A stretch of 64,000 nucleotides of DNA from Auanema rhodensis (taxonomy: Eukaryota; Animalia; Nematoda): positions 13,082,001 to 13,146,000 of the forward strand of contig OZ059897.1 in assembly GCA_964057225.1 (NCBI GenBank), given 5' to 3'. Below the pieces are notes generated by a model. That model did no database searches. It saw only the letters and a list, made by a program, of their open reading frames with translations, and had not been told where the DNA came from. Both the position numbers and the translations under genes were made by a program. Below, in pieces: positions 52,901-60,850 of the stretch. The number at the start of each line of letters is the position of its first letter. Within the stretch, counting starts at the first letter, position 1.

Positions 52901-55900
52901 TTCCTTGAAATCAGGTACATTGACCGGAATGATCCATGCTTATCCAACTCTCAAAAATGGAAAAGTGGACATGAAAGACATCATGAAAAGAGAGAGGAAA
53001 TGAGATTGAAAGATAAAAAAGACATGAGACTCATCTTGGAAAATGAGAAGAATAAGATAGATGGACAGAAGAGTCGTTGACAAACTCTGAAGACTGAGAA
53101 AGAAAAGCCGAAAAAGGGCAACAAGTTTCTCCTTGGCTTCACTCCGCCCGAATCTGCTCAGCTGTATCTTTAGTAACATCATCATCATCACAACCACCCA
53201 ATACTTCTTCGACGTTTCAAAGTATATTGTCTAGTATCAACAACGTTTCTCTCTATTTTGGCTATCCTATTTGGCTCAGTTTCATCTAGTCCTTCATTGT
53301 CATCTTCATTTTGTAATCAGTTGCTATACTTTTGCCGGATGGCAGCCGTCACGTTGACGAATTCGACATCACTAGCTGCAGCGTCCATACTTTCAAAGCC
53401 TATGACCCTTGCGGAAAAAGTAACACTAGTTGAAAAAGCTATTGATGATGCAAGCAGTACGAGCAGCAGGAGCAGCACTAGTCCACTTCGAGCCAATCAT
53501 ACTGATGAACCTTATCACCATCACGAACCTACTGAATCCCGTCGTAGCTCTGTCGCAACAACGGCTACTGTAATGACGGCAACGGCTTTAGACCAACAAG
53601 AATCTGTATATGTAATAGCTTCCATGACTACTAAGCCATACTCTGGAAGAATTAACCGAACAACGTCCACTCGCAACGCTACAACATGTCGTCGAGTTCG
53701 ATTCCATGATAGGCGCAGAGGCACTACAGGCCAAAGGTATTGAATTTCATGAAAATAGATTTCTTCTTTGATATTTGAAAGCTTTAATAGAAGTGTTGCT
53801 TCAGAGCATGCTCTCATTATTCTATTTCATTTTCTTTTCAAAAGCTATGCCAATATACATCAGATATATATCTTATATCTATCTCGTTTCGCAGTCTGCT
53901 CCTTCCACATATCTCTTGTTCTTTCTTGTTTTTTTAAGAAGAAAAAGAAACTATGATGAACAAAAAAAAAGATTTTTTGTGAATAGGGAAGTAAGAGTAA
54001 AATAAGAAATATTGAGATTGAGGAAGATAAACCGAGAAAAAACGAGATATGCGTATATGAAATGAAAATGTAAGAGAATTAAAGAAATAAAGAGATAGAG
54101 AGATAGAATATGAAAGAAGAGTAAGTGTTCATGACAACCGTTCTTCACGTATGACTTCATTGAGACTAATAGATATTGGACTTTTTTCACGTGTGTCACG
54201 TGTAACTTAACGTATTACGTATCCCATATTCATTTCATTAGCATCATACCCTTCTTACTTAGTAATAGTGAGACGCGGTGTCACAGATCTTCATGACCAA
54301 TGAGCTTTTAAACAGCCAAGGAAACCTTTACTAGTATAACCAAATGTTTAATTTCATTTTCATTTTATCTGTTAATCTTATTGATTTTTATCTTTTTGCA
54401 ATAATTTTTATAATGTTGATGTCGTTCATATTCTCATACTTTCACATCTTATTAAGTCTCACCTTTGAAGCCATGTGTGTATACGTATTTGAATAATTCA
54501 TTTGCTCTAAGTCTTCAGACAACAGTTTCCATGGACATTCATAGTTTAAGTTGGAAAAATTGTAAAAAGCTAATGAGACAGAAAAGCAGACAACAAGACC
54601 AGAAAGAATTGCATAGAAGGTATGACGAGTTAAATGGAAAAAAAATAGTTTCTGATCAGAGGAATGAGTCGAAGTTAAAGCCGACGAATAATTAAAAAGT
54701 TCAATGTGAACTATGACATCTCTTAGAAAATGAATTTGAATTTTGGTTATGAATATTATCTAAGTGCTTCTCTTCTTTCATTTTTTTTTCTTGTTACATC
54801 ATAGATATGAAGAACAAAATTAGTCTTTTGAGAGTAATCCATCCATAGTACATTGTTAATATTTAGTGAAAATTGAAAAGTTTTTTTTTATGATCATTAT
54901 GAAGAATTGAAGAGCTAATATTCGCACTCGCTGTTAAGATTTGACAAACTATTTTTTAAATTTTTCTTTTTGTCTTTCATGTCCAGTTCACTCATACCCT
55001 GTTTGAACTTTTATCTGTTTTCTGATTTTTACGCGCAGATACACACACTTTTACAGCTTTCCTATATCCGCACAACATAGTTCGAGAAAGCACATATTAT
55101 ACATAGACATACATAGATGTATTTTTCATTTTAACGAAGCAGAAAAAAAATGTTCTAAAAGGAAAAATGTTATGTTTATTAGAAATTCTCTTGCTCTCTT
55201 TTCTCTATTATACACCTCTTATGGCAAATAGTCAATCTATATGTTGCTTATAACTTTATAGCTATACCGATGGATTAATATAGTTCTTATACACATATTC
55301 CTTAATTATATATTAATAACTTCATTTAAAATTATTTCAGAACAGAACTTTTGATTAAGTAATTTTCTTGTTTTGTTCTTAAAATGATCAACGTGTAGTG
55401 GAGGGAAAGAGTTGAAAGTCTGAAAAAGCCTTTTACCAATAGTTGTTGTATCTGATAAACTATCAGATGGAAATCTTTTTTAATTTATATAATCTAATCA
55501 TAGATTAGAAAACTTTCATTTCTATCTAGTATTCGAATGAAACTTTGTCTTCATTTCGTCACCTGTTAAACGTGTGCGTGTAGGTTTCAGCCTTGTTTCA
55601 TGAGTATATTCATATAAAAATCCTTTTATATGCAATACACCCACAGAAAATCCTCTGTTTCACTCAAAACTGAAGTCAGTTGATGCTAATGCAGAAGAAG
55701 AGGAGAATGTAGAGAGATTTGAGAGAAAAAAAGAGAAAAAGGAGGAAAAAGAAAAGAGGAAGGAAGGTATCACTTGTGCCCACAAAGTAGACAAATCGTT
55801 TTTAAATCTATAAATACACCTGAATATCTTCATACTCATCCATCAGTAACAATGATTAAAAAGAGTTTTGAATTCAAATTATATCATATTACAAGTTTTT

Positions 55901-58900
55901 TTATCAAATTTCGAAGTTATTTTGTGTCTCTTTCATGTATTCATGAGCTTGATCTGTTTATTTATACTAATCATTAGTAACAAATACAGAATAAGTTTCT
56001 TTTTTTCTAAGTAACTATATATAACTAATTTAATTATAAATATAAATTATATACAAATAATGAATATATATATAGTATATAGTATATAATCTTTTATTCA
56101 AATTTGCTCGATGTTCAGTTTTAAAATTTCTTTGAGAAAAAAAAACCATTGGATTTTGCATAATAAATTGGGGGGAAGATTTTTTTTTTGTTTTCACTCA
56201 AAAACATTCTTTTTCCTACTCACGAAGAAAAAAGTGTTAAATCATCTTAGGATTCATAAAATTGCATGGAACATTTGGGTGGTACAAACTACTTTTTGCT
56301 TTTTCTTTTCAAAAAAAAAGAAAGAGAAAGATTATTTTGGAAAAATGTTACTCTATCTTCAAGATAATATTTTTAGAATGATCAATTTTGCAGCAAGTTT
56401 ATGTCAGTGAATATCAGAAATAAAAGACAAAAATCAAAGTTCGAGCTATTTATCTAAAAGAAAGATGTTTTTTTTTATTCATACTGCTGTTCACTTATAT
56501 TATTTTTTACAATCTATCTTCATCTTTAAAATTACTTTTGTTTATATTTCAAATATTATGCTTTTTTTTAATAATGAATTGTCTTATGAATACGTTTTGA
56601 GAATATCTTTTTTAGATCAAATGAGTTATAATATTTTTCATATTTCGATGTTTCTTACATCATATTCTGAAAATTAAACATAATATATGTAGACATGGTA
56701 TGGACATGTACATACATCTACATACATATGTATATAACTCTCTACTGTTATAATGAAATCAAACGATTTTATTTCAAAAATAATTATTAATATATATATA
56801 TATAATAAAATAATTCATAATTTTATATTGTTTTCATAATATTCATTACGACATATGTGAAGTTTTAGAAGAGCATTCATTCTTGCACTTTTCTTACTTT
56901 TTTAATTTGAAATTTCTAAATATACATATCTAATGGGAAATACAGTTACAACAAAGTTTTTTGTTTGAATATTAATTAAAATTCAATAATAATAATGTTC
57001 TCAACTAACTATTTTCAACTATTCTTCTGTTATTTTGATTTTTCCATTTCATTTGTATTAAATATAGTTTTATACTGTTACTGTTGCATAACTCCGGAAA
57101 GTGACTGCGACTTTAACCAAGCATTAATGTTTTAATTATATTCAGAAACTGAATAATATTTCTGAATATATTTTTTTAACTGGGAAAATGAAAATTTGCA
57201 TTTTTTTCAGCTTATTGTTCATTTGTGAACATGATTTCTGGGGGACTTCCAGCTAGCTTTGTCTCGCTCTCTCTTTCTCCCTCTGTGTGTATCTCTCTCA
57301 GAGTTTTATAGAGATCAACATTGACTTCCCTAGTTGCTTGTCATATAATTCATATTTTTCATTTGAAAAATAGAAAATCTAATTATAATTAATAACTTCT
57401 TCAATTTTGCAGGATGGTCTCCTCAACATCACTGGCTTGGACGTGCCTTTTAGTACAATTGGTTTTATCTTGTGTATGTTTAATAGCGTCATTGGCTATA
57501 ATAGCTGCGAAATTGCAATCTACATCAATACATCCAGAAAAGCAGCATATTAGGTTCGTAGTAGATTTTAAGTTTTGTCGTTTTGTTTATTTCTTTGTTT
57601 TGGCTTAATTTGAAAAAAAAAGATATTTCTTTTCATAAGAATTATAAGAAGAAATGAAGACTTGACATAATGAGATGACGACTTTTGATATTTTGAAAAA
57701 AAAATTTTAAATAAAAAACAAATTTATTATATATATATATATAATAAATTTTTTGAAGTTTTATAATATATGTATATATATTATAAAACTTAATTTAATA
57801 AATGCCGTATGTTATGGTACATTTATGAAACTTCTATGGGTATAAACCAATAAATAGCTTCGTTTAGTAAGCTCTTAAAAGAAAGAAAAATATTTTCTTT
57901 TAAGTTTCTATTCAATTCTTTAACATTTTTCTTTTTGAATCCTAATGGAAAAAGTTCTAAAGTAGATGTAAACAAGAATAAAGTTTCTTTCGAATAAAAG
58001 CAAACCAGACTGATCTTATAAATGAGTGTCGAATGGCGTGAAAACAGGAAGTAAAGTATGGTTTACGTGAGAATATTGAAGCAAAAGTCATTTTATAAAA
58101 AAAATTTGAATAAAGCGGTCCATTCTCATAATTCTATATAAATAATCTTTTTCTTTTCAGCATCGAATGGTGGTCCTTTTGTGTTATGAGCTTTTTAATG
58201 ATATGGGCTACAATCTTTTCAATGTTAGGATTATCAGGACATAAAAAAATGTTAATTCTGCCTCATATATTATTATTGGTAAGTTTAAAATTATTTTTTG
58301 GATAACAAAATAAGAAATTAAACTATAATATTATTATTATTATTATTTTGATTTCATAGAACTGAATATATACAATAAACTTACATACATACATCGTATG
58401 TATTATTAGATATGTTAAATATAGATATTTATATATTATTTACATATTAATGAATGTTATAATTTGTTTACTATGCAGTACTATTACGTACATATGTGTA
58501 TATCCGTATCTAAAGTCCATCCTAAACCGGACCAGTAGTGTCAGAGCTGTCGCCATGGGTGATAATCTCTAAATTGCCTCAATGGTTCGATGGCTGAATC
58601 ACACCTACACATGAACTACTAACCTTTCACATTACATTTGAATTCTAAATATATTTTTTGTTAATTTTTCTTAAAATTTAAAGCAACATTTGACAATTAT
58701 CTACAGTTTTTTTGTATTTCAGCTTGTATACAGCTTATTCGTTGGACGTGTACTTCTTTTAGTTTTATTAGAGTTTGAGTTAACTGAACTCAATTGGCTA
58801 ATTGGAGTTTGTGTCTTAACAACAGCCGGTAATATCATTTAATCAAATAATATCCTTCATAACAACAACATTTAGAAATATTTCTAACGTGCTCAATTGT

Positions 58901-58934
58901 TTTTGAATTTCGAACGGTTACGTCTATGACCTAG
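43921..58934 (+). CDS. Small four-TM membrane protein, cluster gene 1 (unknown function), isoform with distal first exon
   Basis: First exon 43921-44000 (MPSSALLTIPDAHMGRKRRVSDFPHRK, GTGAGT donor, phase 2) is phase-compatible with core exons 57413-57553, 58161-58278, 58723-58828 and 58876-58934, which encode four hydrophobic helices. The core is well supported; the 13-kb join is inferred. Confidence 0.72.
53339..53736 (+). CDS. Alternative first coding exon of four-TM gene 1 (Ser/Thr-rich, ~132 aa)
   Basis: GC-richer open frame MAAVTLTNS..CRRVRFHDRRRGTTGQR ending AG|gtattg (phase 2), compatible with exon 57413. It is preceded by GA-rich promoter-like DNA at ~52330-53150. Confidence 0.7.
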
Positions 58935-58956
58935 AGTATATTAGAAATAAAATATA

Positions 58957-59695
58957 ATGGCAATGGATTATCAGGTTAGTTAGAATAAAGAATATATAAA
59001 TTATTTTATTTTTTATATATTAAATCATTATTTAGGTTGTTCTTGCTGGTGAAATGGTACTTCTAATTACGGGTATTACGGCTATTGGTATGTTGCATGG
59101 TTGGACAGAAGGTGTCGGCTATCATATGAGGGAATACTATACTCCTTTGTACGTTTATATAATTTTTTTTTGAAATTGGTAATATTATCTATTTCAGATG
59201 GGCATGTGCTGTATTAATGTGTGCTCTTTTACTATTAATTATATCATTAGCAATGGTTTTCATCTTTCTTCACTTTAATTGTCCTGGAATTATTAAACAA
59301 CATATCTTCGCATTGGTATTAATTTATAATTTATATATTGAATTTGGATATAATTAAGTCACACAAATACAATAATTTTTACTCTTAAAAAAGCTTTCAT
59401 ATATCAAACGATCAATATATCTTATACCATATAGGGAAAATTCTTAACTATTAGGCTTAAATCAGCATATAAATCATATAGTATATGAATATATAAATCT
59501 AATTAAGATATTCATGATTTTCAGGCTGTTTCGTGGCCGTTATCGTTATGCATCACAGTATCAGCAGTAGTTGCTGGAGCTCCAATACTTGTCGGAATTG
59601 TCTTAATTCTATTTTTCTCATCATTACTTCCATTTGCGTATATATATAGTCATGCTGAATGGACTACAGCAACTGAAGATTCACCCGTAATATAA
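58957..59695 (+). CDS. Small four-TM membrane protein, cluster gene 2 (~139 aa)
   Basis: Exons 58957-58974, 59036-59148, 59198-59315 and 59525-59695 are in frame: MAMDYQ-VVLAGEMVLLITG..-WACAVLMCALLLLIISLAMV..KQHIFAL-AVSWPLSLC..EDSPVI*. An extra intron from 59687 could give a slightly longer C-terminus. Confidence 0.8.
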
Positions 59696-59924
59696 ACAAT
59701 TTACAAATAAACAGTTCTCACCTTCCTCACTAGAATCCTCATCTAGCTTCCTCTCGCTTCACTCCTCCTCTCTTTCTTTTTCCTCCTGATTCCTAGTTTG
59801 TGAGCTAGAAGTTCTGATTAGTAAGTACTCCTTTACTTGTTATTTTGTTATATTCTTCCTTATTTCCTTAGTATAAACGAAAACAATAAGATTATCTTCC
59901 ATTCTTGTGAGCTGTGCAGTGATT

Positions 59925-60488
59925 ATGTTACGAACGATGACATTCAATTCTGAAGATCCAAACATCTATCTTCCTATTAAAATTCCTCTTCTCATCATTA
60001 CTATCTTTCAACTAACTTTTACTGTCATCTTTATTGTTGAAATTTCACTAACATTAACAAGAGATGATCAGTACTTTGTGAATAGCACAACAAGGTAAGC
60101 CTATTCAAATCTCTATCCTTCCCCTATGGATAATATCTTAATTTAGAATATTCTCTATCATATACTTAACTATCAATATACTTTGGGCTTTAAGCCTCGG
60201 ATGTGTTGTATACGTGATGATAACTAATCGATATTCTTTCTTAATCCCCCATTTAGTATATACGGTAATACATGAATTCTTTATAATTTCATTGAAGAGT
60301 TCTTCTTATTTCAGTCTATTTTGGAAATGTTTTATTTTTTATCTACAGCACTACTTTTCTTTGATGATACCGAACCATTATCATTAATATTTATCATATC
60401 TTTAACTATATTTCTGGCAATTTGTATCTATCATGAAATCAAATGTTATAGGAAAATGCGAATGTATGTTTGCAATGATGTGTTATAA
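59925..60488 (+). CDS. Small four-TM membrane protein, cluster gene 3 (~153 aa)
   Basis: Exons 59925-60094, 60147-60264 and 60315-60488 are in frame: MLRTMTFNSEDP..IFQLTF..-IFSIIYL..RYSFLIPHLVYT-SILEMF..IFLAICIYHEIKCYRKMRMYVCNDVL*. Confidence 0.8.
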
Positions 60489-60850
60489 TTTATAAAACGA
60501 AAAATCCCTTGATATTGATATGCTGAATATCTATTCTTACCAACCTTGTCACATGCTGTTTTTTTGTTTAATTATTGTCATGTTTGAACTTATCACTTTC
60601 TCCAGGTCACTTATTTTATAAATTAATAAAAATTATGTGAATTAATCGTTATTGAAACTTAATACAAATATATGAAAACATTATTAATGAAAACTTTAAA
60701 ATATGAAATATAAATAAAATTATTTATAATTAATTAAGAAATACATTAATCTTATCTAATTATAGTATGTTTTCATAATACAAGAATTAAATAAGAATAT
60801 TTTATAAAAATATTCTTGTTATAGCTAACTATTCGCATATTATATACAAA

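Follow-up and report, generated by a model that had tools for sequence, protein, structure and literature searches.

How is a gene expressed when its start codon lies 22 nt downstream of the stop codon of the preceding gene? We address this question in a stretch of 64,000 nt from the genome of the nematode Auanema rhodensis (hereafter, the window), in which the TAG stop codon of one open reading frame (ORF1, 58932-58934) and the ATG of the next (ORF2, 58957) are separated only by the sequence AGTATATTAGAAATAAAATATA. According to the textbook view, spliced-leader (SL) trans-splicing always separates the precursors of nematode operons into mRNAs of one gene each, and polycistrons of nematodes are thought to be resolved in this manner. 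In SL2-type operons, the poly(A) site is followed at about 100 nt by the trans-splice site, and both UTRs come in addition to this distance. The original prediction on this DNA had described the TAG, the 22-nt spacer and the out-of-frame ATG, and had argued that readthrough cannot join the two ORFs. The window sequence confirmed the former, and the latter was upheld: the ATG of ORF2 is in frame +1 relative to ORF1, and a TAA three codons upstream of this ATG closes the ORF2 frame, so that readthrough could not produce a joint protein. We propose that the locus gives rise to a conserved polycistronic RNA, and we infer that ORF2 is most likely reached by reinitiation after termination at ORF1 (with a probability of roughly 0.55 for this reading).

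ORF1 encodes a protein of 140 aa from the ATG at 57414, or of 170 aa from the ATG at 54531, and ORF2 encodes a protein of 139 aa. The two ORFs extend over 4-5 and 4 exons, respectively, remaining free of stop codons in DNA of about 29% G+C, and the hydropathy profile of each protein has four hydrophobic helices. ORF1 and ORF2 are genuine genes for four-helix membrane proteins. Homologues of the last ORF2 exon were found in nematodes only. Full-length ORF2 orthologues (135-147 aa) are present in clade IV (Panagrolaimus, Panagrellus, Halicephalobus, Ditylenchus, Acrobeloides, Aphelenchoides, Bursaphelenchus and Strongyloides) and in clade V (Heterorhabditis, Haemonchus, Necator, Ancylostoma, Nippostrongylus, Cylicocyclus, Auanema and Mesorhabditis). 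Orthologues of ORF1, of ~139 aa, were identified in strongylids. One ORF1 entry of H. contortus bears a name given by its depositor, “Y51H7BR.4 isoform a”, which refers to C. elegans; this name is the only link to a Caenorhabditis orthologue, none being found by word-index search, and publications that name the cosmid were uninformative.

The closest relative of the window is Auanema sp. JU1783, in which the exons are colinear with those described here and protein identity is 95% for ORF1 and 88% for ORF2. Between the window and JU1783, dN/dS is 0.018 for ORF1 and 0.048 for ORF2, at a dS that is saturated (1.4-1.8). In a pair of strongylids, the corresponding values are 0.024 and 0.133. These ratios indicate strong purifying selection on both ORFs, from which it follows that the two proteins are produced and that translation of ORF2 takes place in vivo. 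Given that ORF2 is located downstream of a long ORF in the same RNA, one might instead suspect a relic that is carried in the 3' UTR of gene 1 and never translated; with an ORF2 dN/dS this low in both comparisons (including that with saturated dS), and with orthologues across clades IV and V, we consider this scarcely credible.

Our database searches used exon pieces and the identifiers of homologues rather than the whole spliced proteins of the window. The ORF1 proteins of a strongylid and of B. xylophilus scored 22.6 and 24.8 bits against the Pfam family DUF7027 (PF22954), whose cut-off is 27, and precomputed PF22954 matches are on record for several strongylid ORF1 orthologues. The Atlas cluster of ORF1 is labelled “MARVEL domain-containing protein”. 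For ORF2, no Pfam family was found with either exon pieces or full-length orthologues, and the “MARVEL” label derives from UniRef entries only; Pfam searches with single window exons returned nothing usable. We also considered ORF1 and ORF2 as recognisable paralogues, and rejected this for lack of sequence support (Smith-Waterman score 46, z 1.45 versus shuffles). The two genes are alike in their exon pattern only, sharing a 118-nt exon and the same phases.

The RNA evidence for the window comes from k=31 contigs of four runs, all belonging to one study. These runs contain ~46% of the sampled words of 57300-60600, the share expected of spliced RNA, and each yielded one contig of ~1.9 kb (54519..60604), which in run X1 is in two pieces. 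All joints within the contigs are GT..AG, with 0 mismatches in 4/4 runs (Table 1). In all four runs a single spliced contig covers ORF1, ORF2 and the ORF3 region, that is, the co-transcription expected of an SL2-type operon. The stop codon, the spacer and the ATG all fall in one 99-nt internal exon, cis-spliced on both sides (the bridging exon). Its first part, 58876-58934, is the last 19 codons of ORF1 with the TAG; the spacer follows at 58935-58956, and ORF2 contributes its opening 6 codons at 58957-58974.

Table 1. Features of the locus in the window and length of the ORF1-ORF2 spacer across nematodes. A slash marks a splice joint.
Feature	Position in the window or length	Strand	Basis
5' exon	54519..54619	+	Loose 5' ends of the contigs; conserved in JU1783
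ORF1 exon	57413..57553	+	Joint 57553/58161 in 4/4 runs
ORF1 exon, 118 nt	58161..58278	+	Contigs; length and phases equal those of ORF2 exon 59198-59315
ORF1 exon, phase-1 end	58723..58828	+	Joints 58278/58723 and 58828/58876
Bridging exon, 99 nt	58876..58974	+	Unbroken, 0 mismatches, contigs of 4/4 runs
ORF2 exon	59036..59148	+	Contigs
ORF2 exon, 118 nt	59198..59315	+	Contigs
Last ORF2 coding exon	59525..59695	+	Contigs; stop TAA 59693-95; exon continues to about 60604
Optional 51-nt intron, ORF2-ORF3 spacer	59821..59871	+	Low-depth GT..AG joint, run X1 only
ORF3, third cistron	59925..60488	+	Splice model, translation, homology by eye
ORF1-ORF2 spacer, window	22 nt		
ORF1-ORF2 spacer, Auanema sp. 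JU1783	14 nt		
ORF1-ORF2 spacer, H. contortus	0 nt (TGAATG)		
ORF1-ORF2 spacer, N. brasiliensis	5 nt		
ORF1-ORF2 spacer, a strongylid known from RNA contigs	5 nt		
ORF1-ORF2 spacer, M. belari	69 nt		
ORF1-ORF2 spacer, B. xylophilus	97 nt		
ORF1-ORF2 spacer, A. besseyi	118 nt		
ORF1-ORF2 spacer, Halicephalobus sp. NKZ332	170 nt		

At the 5' side, the contigs have a loose end that matches 54588-54617, whence the upstream exon was delimited. This exon is joined to 57413 across an intron of 2.8 kb, and its ATG at 54531 starts a basic N-terminal extension of 30 codons that continues in frame with ORF1 into exon 57413. The exon, its ATG and its frame are all kept in JU1783, where indels are multiples of three. 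The ATG at 57414 is, in the alignment of orthologues, the start shared with the strongylid proteins (MVS...). Gene 1 as drawn in the original prediction lacks the coding exon at 54519-54619, which is conserved. The acceptor of the 5' exon (cttcag/ACA) is a possible SL site. In the strongylid RNAs, SL1 or a different 5' exon takes the place of this exon at the equivalent acceptor. No SL1 gene was found within the window, and an Rfam search over the window gave no match. Upstream of the first exon of the transcript, and outside the contigs, there is a Ser/Thr-rich open frame of 161 codons (53258-53743) that ends at a GT donor.

Downstream of ORF2, a third cistron (ORF3) is composed of three exons (59925-60094, 60147-60264 and 60315-60488) encoding 153 aa with four helices. 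It is homologous by eye to the ORF3 of a strongylid, of A. besseyi and of the locus L002, and is included in a continuous contig piece (59524-60600). Both ORF3 introns (60095-60146 and 60265-60314) are retained in the window contigs. The orthologous introns are retained in the strongylid contigs L010-L015 as well (about 1086-1139 and about 1257-1308 in L010), and the strongylid contigs L016-L019 end exactly at the first ORF3 donor. This pattern may reflect conserved regulated or inefficient splicing within the polycistronic RNA, and it suggests that part of the spanning RNA is incompletely processed.

RNA contigs from two further species have the same form. For the strongylid, 17 Logan contigs with ORF2, drawn from many runs, are on record in two SRA accession series, and every one of the 10 that we examined holds ORF1 and ORF2 with the 5-nt spacer between them, plus the beginning of ORF3 (10/10). 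Four of these contigs open with the final part of SL1 (..CCAAGTTTGAG), attached upstream of ORF1, and another terminates beyond ORF3 with AATAAA and, 14 nt further on, a poly(A) run; the SL1 and poly(A) ends are on different contigs. In B. xylophilus, six runs gave six RNA contigs, each of which covers ORF2, the 97-nt spacer before it and the end of ORF1. No SL was seen at or near the start of ORF2 in the contigs of the window (4), of the strongylid (10 of 17) or of B. xylophilus (6). The assembled form is therefore a spanning spliced RNA in three species from two clades.

The cluster ORF1-ORF2-ORF3 is kept in clades IV and V, in the same order and on one strand at every genomic locus examined; for M. 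belari, and likewise for three short contigs, the sequence covers only part of it. The original prediction had proposed to compare spacer length at orthologous loci. We found that it ranges from 0 to 170 nt, and that the short-spacer layout recurs in other Rhabditina. JU1783, H. contortus and N. brasiliensis have a bridging exon like that of the window, with its acceptor ~55-60 nt before the stop codon and its donor directly after codon 4 to 6 of ORF2. All four short spacers outside the window lack both AG and AATAAA; spacers of 0-14 nt of this kind could not accommodate a poly(A) signal together with an acceptor for trans-splicing. Very short gaps between cistrons are seen repeatedly in the cluster, at its first junction as at its second, and in different lineages. 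The ORF2/ORF3 spacer is 9 nt in A. besseyi (L001 7264-7278) and in the strongylid (L010 922-936), the corresponding junction is ~20 nt in H. contortus, and in the locus L002 stop and start overlap as ATGA (766-769). In the window this spacer is 229 nt, with the optional 51-nt intron.

The layout also bears on the idea that ORF1 and ORF2 form a fused eight-helix protein, through stop readthrough, frameshifting, or splicing from a donor at 58917 (ACG/GTTACG) to exon 59036. Such a donor would give an open fusion frame in the window, and in H. contortus and M. belari the two ORFs happen to share a frame. However, the offset of the ORF2 frame relative to ORF1 varies among species (0, 1, 2), as does the spacer (0 to 170 nt), and several species retain both the ATG of ORF2 and, around DYQ, a conserved N-terminal motif; in the window, the ORF2 frame is closed three codons before its ATG. 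The varying frame offset shows that the ORFs are separate, and excludes a conserved fusion by readthrough or frameshift. As for splicing, the original prediction had named in-frame splicing of gene 1 into gene 2 as an outcome that would speak against it, and this was not what we observed: across the contigs of the four runs, 58917 is not used as a joint in the bridging exon, and loose ends are absent at both 58945 and 58957. A single-gene model in which the 58917 donor makes the stop and the ATG intronic was rejected on the same basis, since the exon is continuous over 58876-58974 in all runs. Altogether, we regard a fused product as highly improbable.

A much stronger competitor is an operon with overlapping signals (SL1-type, or with alternative cis- and trans-splicing), in which some pre-mRNAs would be trans-spliced just upstream of ORF2 to give a monocistronic ORF2 mRNA. 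The candidate sites would be TATTAG/A (58945), the AG of the stop codon, or the acceptor of the bridging exon at 58876; in the last case the leader would bear only a two-codon mini-ORF (AUG-ACC-UAG). The spanning RNA would then be the message of ORF1 only, or a precursor, and the ORF2 mRNA would be made at the expense of the ORF1 message. This is the normal way in which nematode operons are resolved. Suitable acceptors are found in relatives with longer spacers (tttttggacag/gATG in B. xylophilus, and ctctttccag 10 nt upstream of the ATG in M. belari). Further, the tiny-spacer species for which genomic sequence was seen have an intron and an acceptor 60-80 nt upstream of the ORF2 ATG, while A. 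besseyi, with its long spacer, has no acceptor at that distance.

The contigs must be read with this competitor in mind. A contig across two genes is not proof of a single molecule, and rare SL-bearing forms or a minor trans-spliced ORF2 mRNA could be missed. Short tips such as the 22-nt SL or poly(A) are clipped by assemblers, so that a missing SL on contigs is uninformative. In addition, the candidate acceptor at 58945 is exactly 30 nt from the donor at 58974; consequently, a single contig would also result if a gene-1 RNA extending past 58974 were present alongside an SL-ORF2 RNA. In ordinary nematode operons, polycistronic precursors that are already polyadenylated are easily caught (PMC1657053; PMC7704054), and spliced polycistronic intermediates have been reported from Brugia (PMC1657053).

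Several observations speak against trans-splicing at ORF2. Among the contigs examined from the three species, none starts with an SL at ORF2 or close to it, a cut at any of the candidate sites would ruin the ORF1 message, and cis-splicing normally outcompetes trans-splicing where an acceptor has an upstream donor. The candidate signals themselves are not conserved. TATTAG (58939-44) and AATAAA (58946-51) are both located within the 22-nt spacer, where the original prediction had placed them as possible processing signals; their presence was verified, but the 14-nt spacer of JU1783 has neither, an 8-nt gap taking out TATTAG. Among random 22-mers of the window, 2.7% contain AATAAA and 13% a YAG-like acceptor. 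Because the two motifs are absent from JU1783, and given this background frequency of AATAAA, they are probably chance occurrences. Of the two alternatives that had been put forward, the dicistronic mRNA thus agrees with the RNA contigs and with the conserved shared-exon junction, whereas mutually exclusive processing loses the signals on which it was based. On balance, we regard trans-splicing at ORF2 as a possibility to be taken seriously, if not the one that we would favour, and it could coexist with reinitiation on a polycistronic RNA. A second AATAAA (58985-58990) is found in the intron directly after the bridging exon; retention of that intron could yield a short mRNA of gene 1 only, and none was seen among the contigs.

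The reading that we prefer, reinitiation on a polycistronic RNA, would operate as follows. One transcript carries three small four-helix ORFs; it opens with the 5' exon (54519-54619), continues through six more exons and closes with a long one that reaches ~60604. The RNA, as assembled, is cis-spliced through the bridging exon and uncut between ORF1 and ORF2. Ribosomes (or 40S subunits) would terminate at the stop codon of ORF1 and restart at the next AUG, 22 nt downstream, which has an A at position -3. We infer both that the spanning RNA is a translated mRNA and that reinitiation is the mechanism. Reinitiation after an ORF of 140-170 codons is normally very inefficient in eukaryotes. Ribosomes could otherwise arrive at the ORF2 AUG by leaky scanning past the start of ORF1, a mechanism employed in algal polycistrons; however, 11 AUG triplets precede the ORF2 AUG in the mRNA, and ORF1 is not depleted of AUG in the window, the strongylid or B. 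xylophilus, making this route very unlikely.

We searched the junction for elements that might assist translation. Between the window and JU1783, synonymous codons in the exonic parts of 58898-59060 are conserved in 18/22 cases, versus 101/215 elsewhere (Fisher p 0.003, for a zone chosen post hoc, after viewing the profile), while the spacer and introns between these codons have diverged. In the strongylid pair, the comparison was not significant (10/16 versus 88/189, p 0.30). The conservation at the junction fits an RNA-level constraint, which may correspond to splicing enhancers of the small exon or to a translational element. The UGGGA motif (TURBS motif 1) was absent from the 120 nt upstream in both the window and the strongylid mRNA, the bridging exon folded no better than shuffles (z -1.68), and no conserved consensus fold was obtained from five species (-2.1 kcal/mol).

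Comparison with known systems helps to place the locus. With the SL2-type operons of C. elegans and other Rhabditina it shares same-strand genes, a single precursor and a cluster conserved between species; its relatives have spacers (69-170 nt) as long as those of ordinary operons, and an acceptor closely precedes the downstream ATG in B. xylophilus and M. belari. Unlike in those operons, stop and ATG are 22 nt apart here and 0-14 nt apart in other Rhabditina, well short of the usual spacing; the stop and start of the window lie in one cis-spliced internal exon, and an SL at ORF2 was not seen in the contigs. SL1-type operons, which Williams et al. (1999) are said to have described, reportedly have a poly(A) site that abuts the trans-splice site, processing of the two genes being mutually exclusive. 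The locus resembles them in that it has no intercistronic region and that processing of gene 1 or gene 2 could be mutually exclusive; it differs in that theirs is a 3' UTR with a poly(A) signal before the acceptor, while in the window AATAAA follows the candidate acceptor and neither is conserved.

Outside nematodes, termination-reinitiation is known from viruses (calicivirus VP1/VP2, influenza B M1/BM2), where the TURBS motif UGGGA is complementary to helix 26 of 18S rRNA. As in the viral cases, stop and restart overlap or are a few nt apart in some of the nematodes (0-5 nt in strongylids, ATGA at ORF2/ORF3 in L002). Unlike in the viral cases, there is no UGGGA and no conserved structure, and the spacer is 22 nt in the window and 69-170 nt in other lineages. 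Among animals, Drosophila stoned A/B and Adh-Adhr are cited as dicistronic mRNAs in PMC5025045, and the “rule-benders” of FlyBase include dicistronic mRNAs (PMC4528330). In the Drosophila cases, a single mature, polyadenylated mRNA holds non-overlapping conserved ORFs that are separated by a short spacer, an arrangement to which the present locus is likened at the contig level; the downstream ORF there requires non-canonical initiation, as it would here. The differences are the nematode host, the presence of three tetraspan cistrons and the location of the junction in a small internal exon. In the literature, we found no description of this locus, nor of translated unresolved polycistronic mRNAs in nematodes. 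A more specific proposal is that of a tricistronic nematode mRNA, SL1-capped at ORF1, polyadenylated after ORF3 and not resolved by trans-splicing, with efficient TURBS-free reinitiation, after ORFs of a full 140 codons, at AUGs 0-22 nt downstream; we advance it tentatively, as something that may well turn out otherwise.

Public annotations obscure the arrangement. The A. besseyi model KAI6208052.1 (L001 6001-7265) fuses ORF1 exons to ORF2 exons, a 259-aa model of N. brasiliensis (L028 7200-9494) apparently fuses ORF2 and ORF3, the JU1783 model (L020 4001) places the start of ORF2 at its second ATG, and the H. contortus model (L007 9537) places the start of ORF3 downstream of a conserved N-terminal motif. 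Since gene models fuse or truncate these genes in four species, similar cases are probably under-annotated.

Distances of 0-22 nt between cistrons are found in several distantly related species, in genes whose two proteins are under strong selection. Either the downstream cistron is translated from an unresolved mRNA, or a cut is made within a coding exon, so that each precursor yields one protein. Both outcomes would be informative on translation reinitiation, on escape from nonsense-mediated decay and on the evolutionary shrinkage of intercistronic regions. The locus may thus serve as a testable candidate for an animal mRNA coding for more than one protein. If the tricistronic reading were true, production of the three small tetraspan membrane proteins would be coupled, and these proteins might work jointly.
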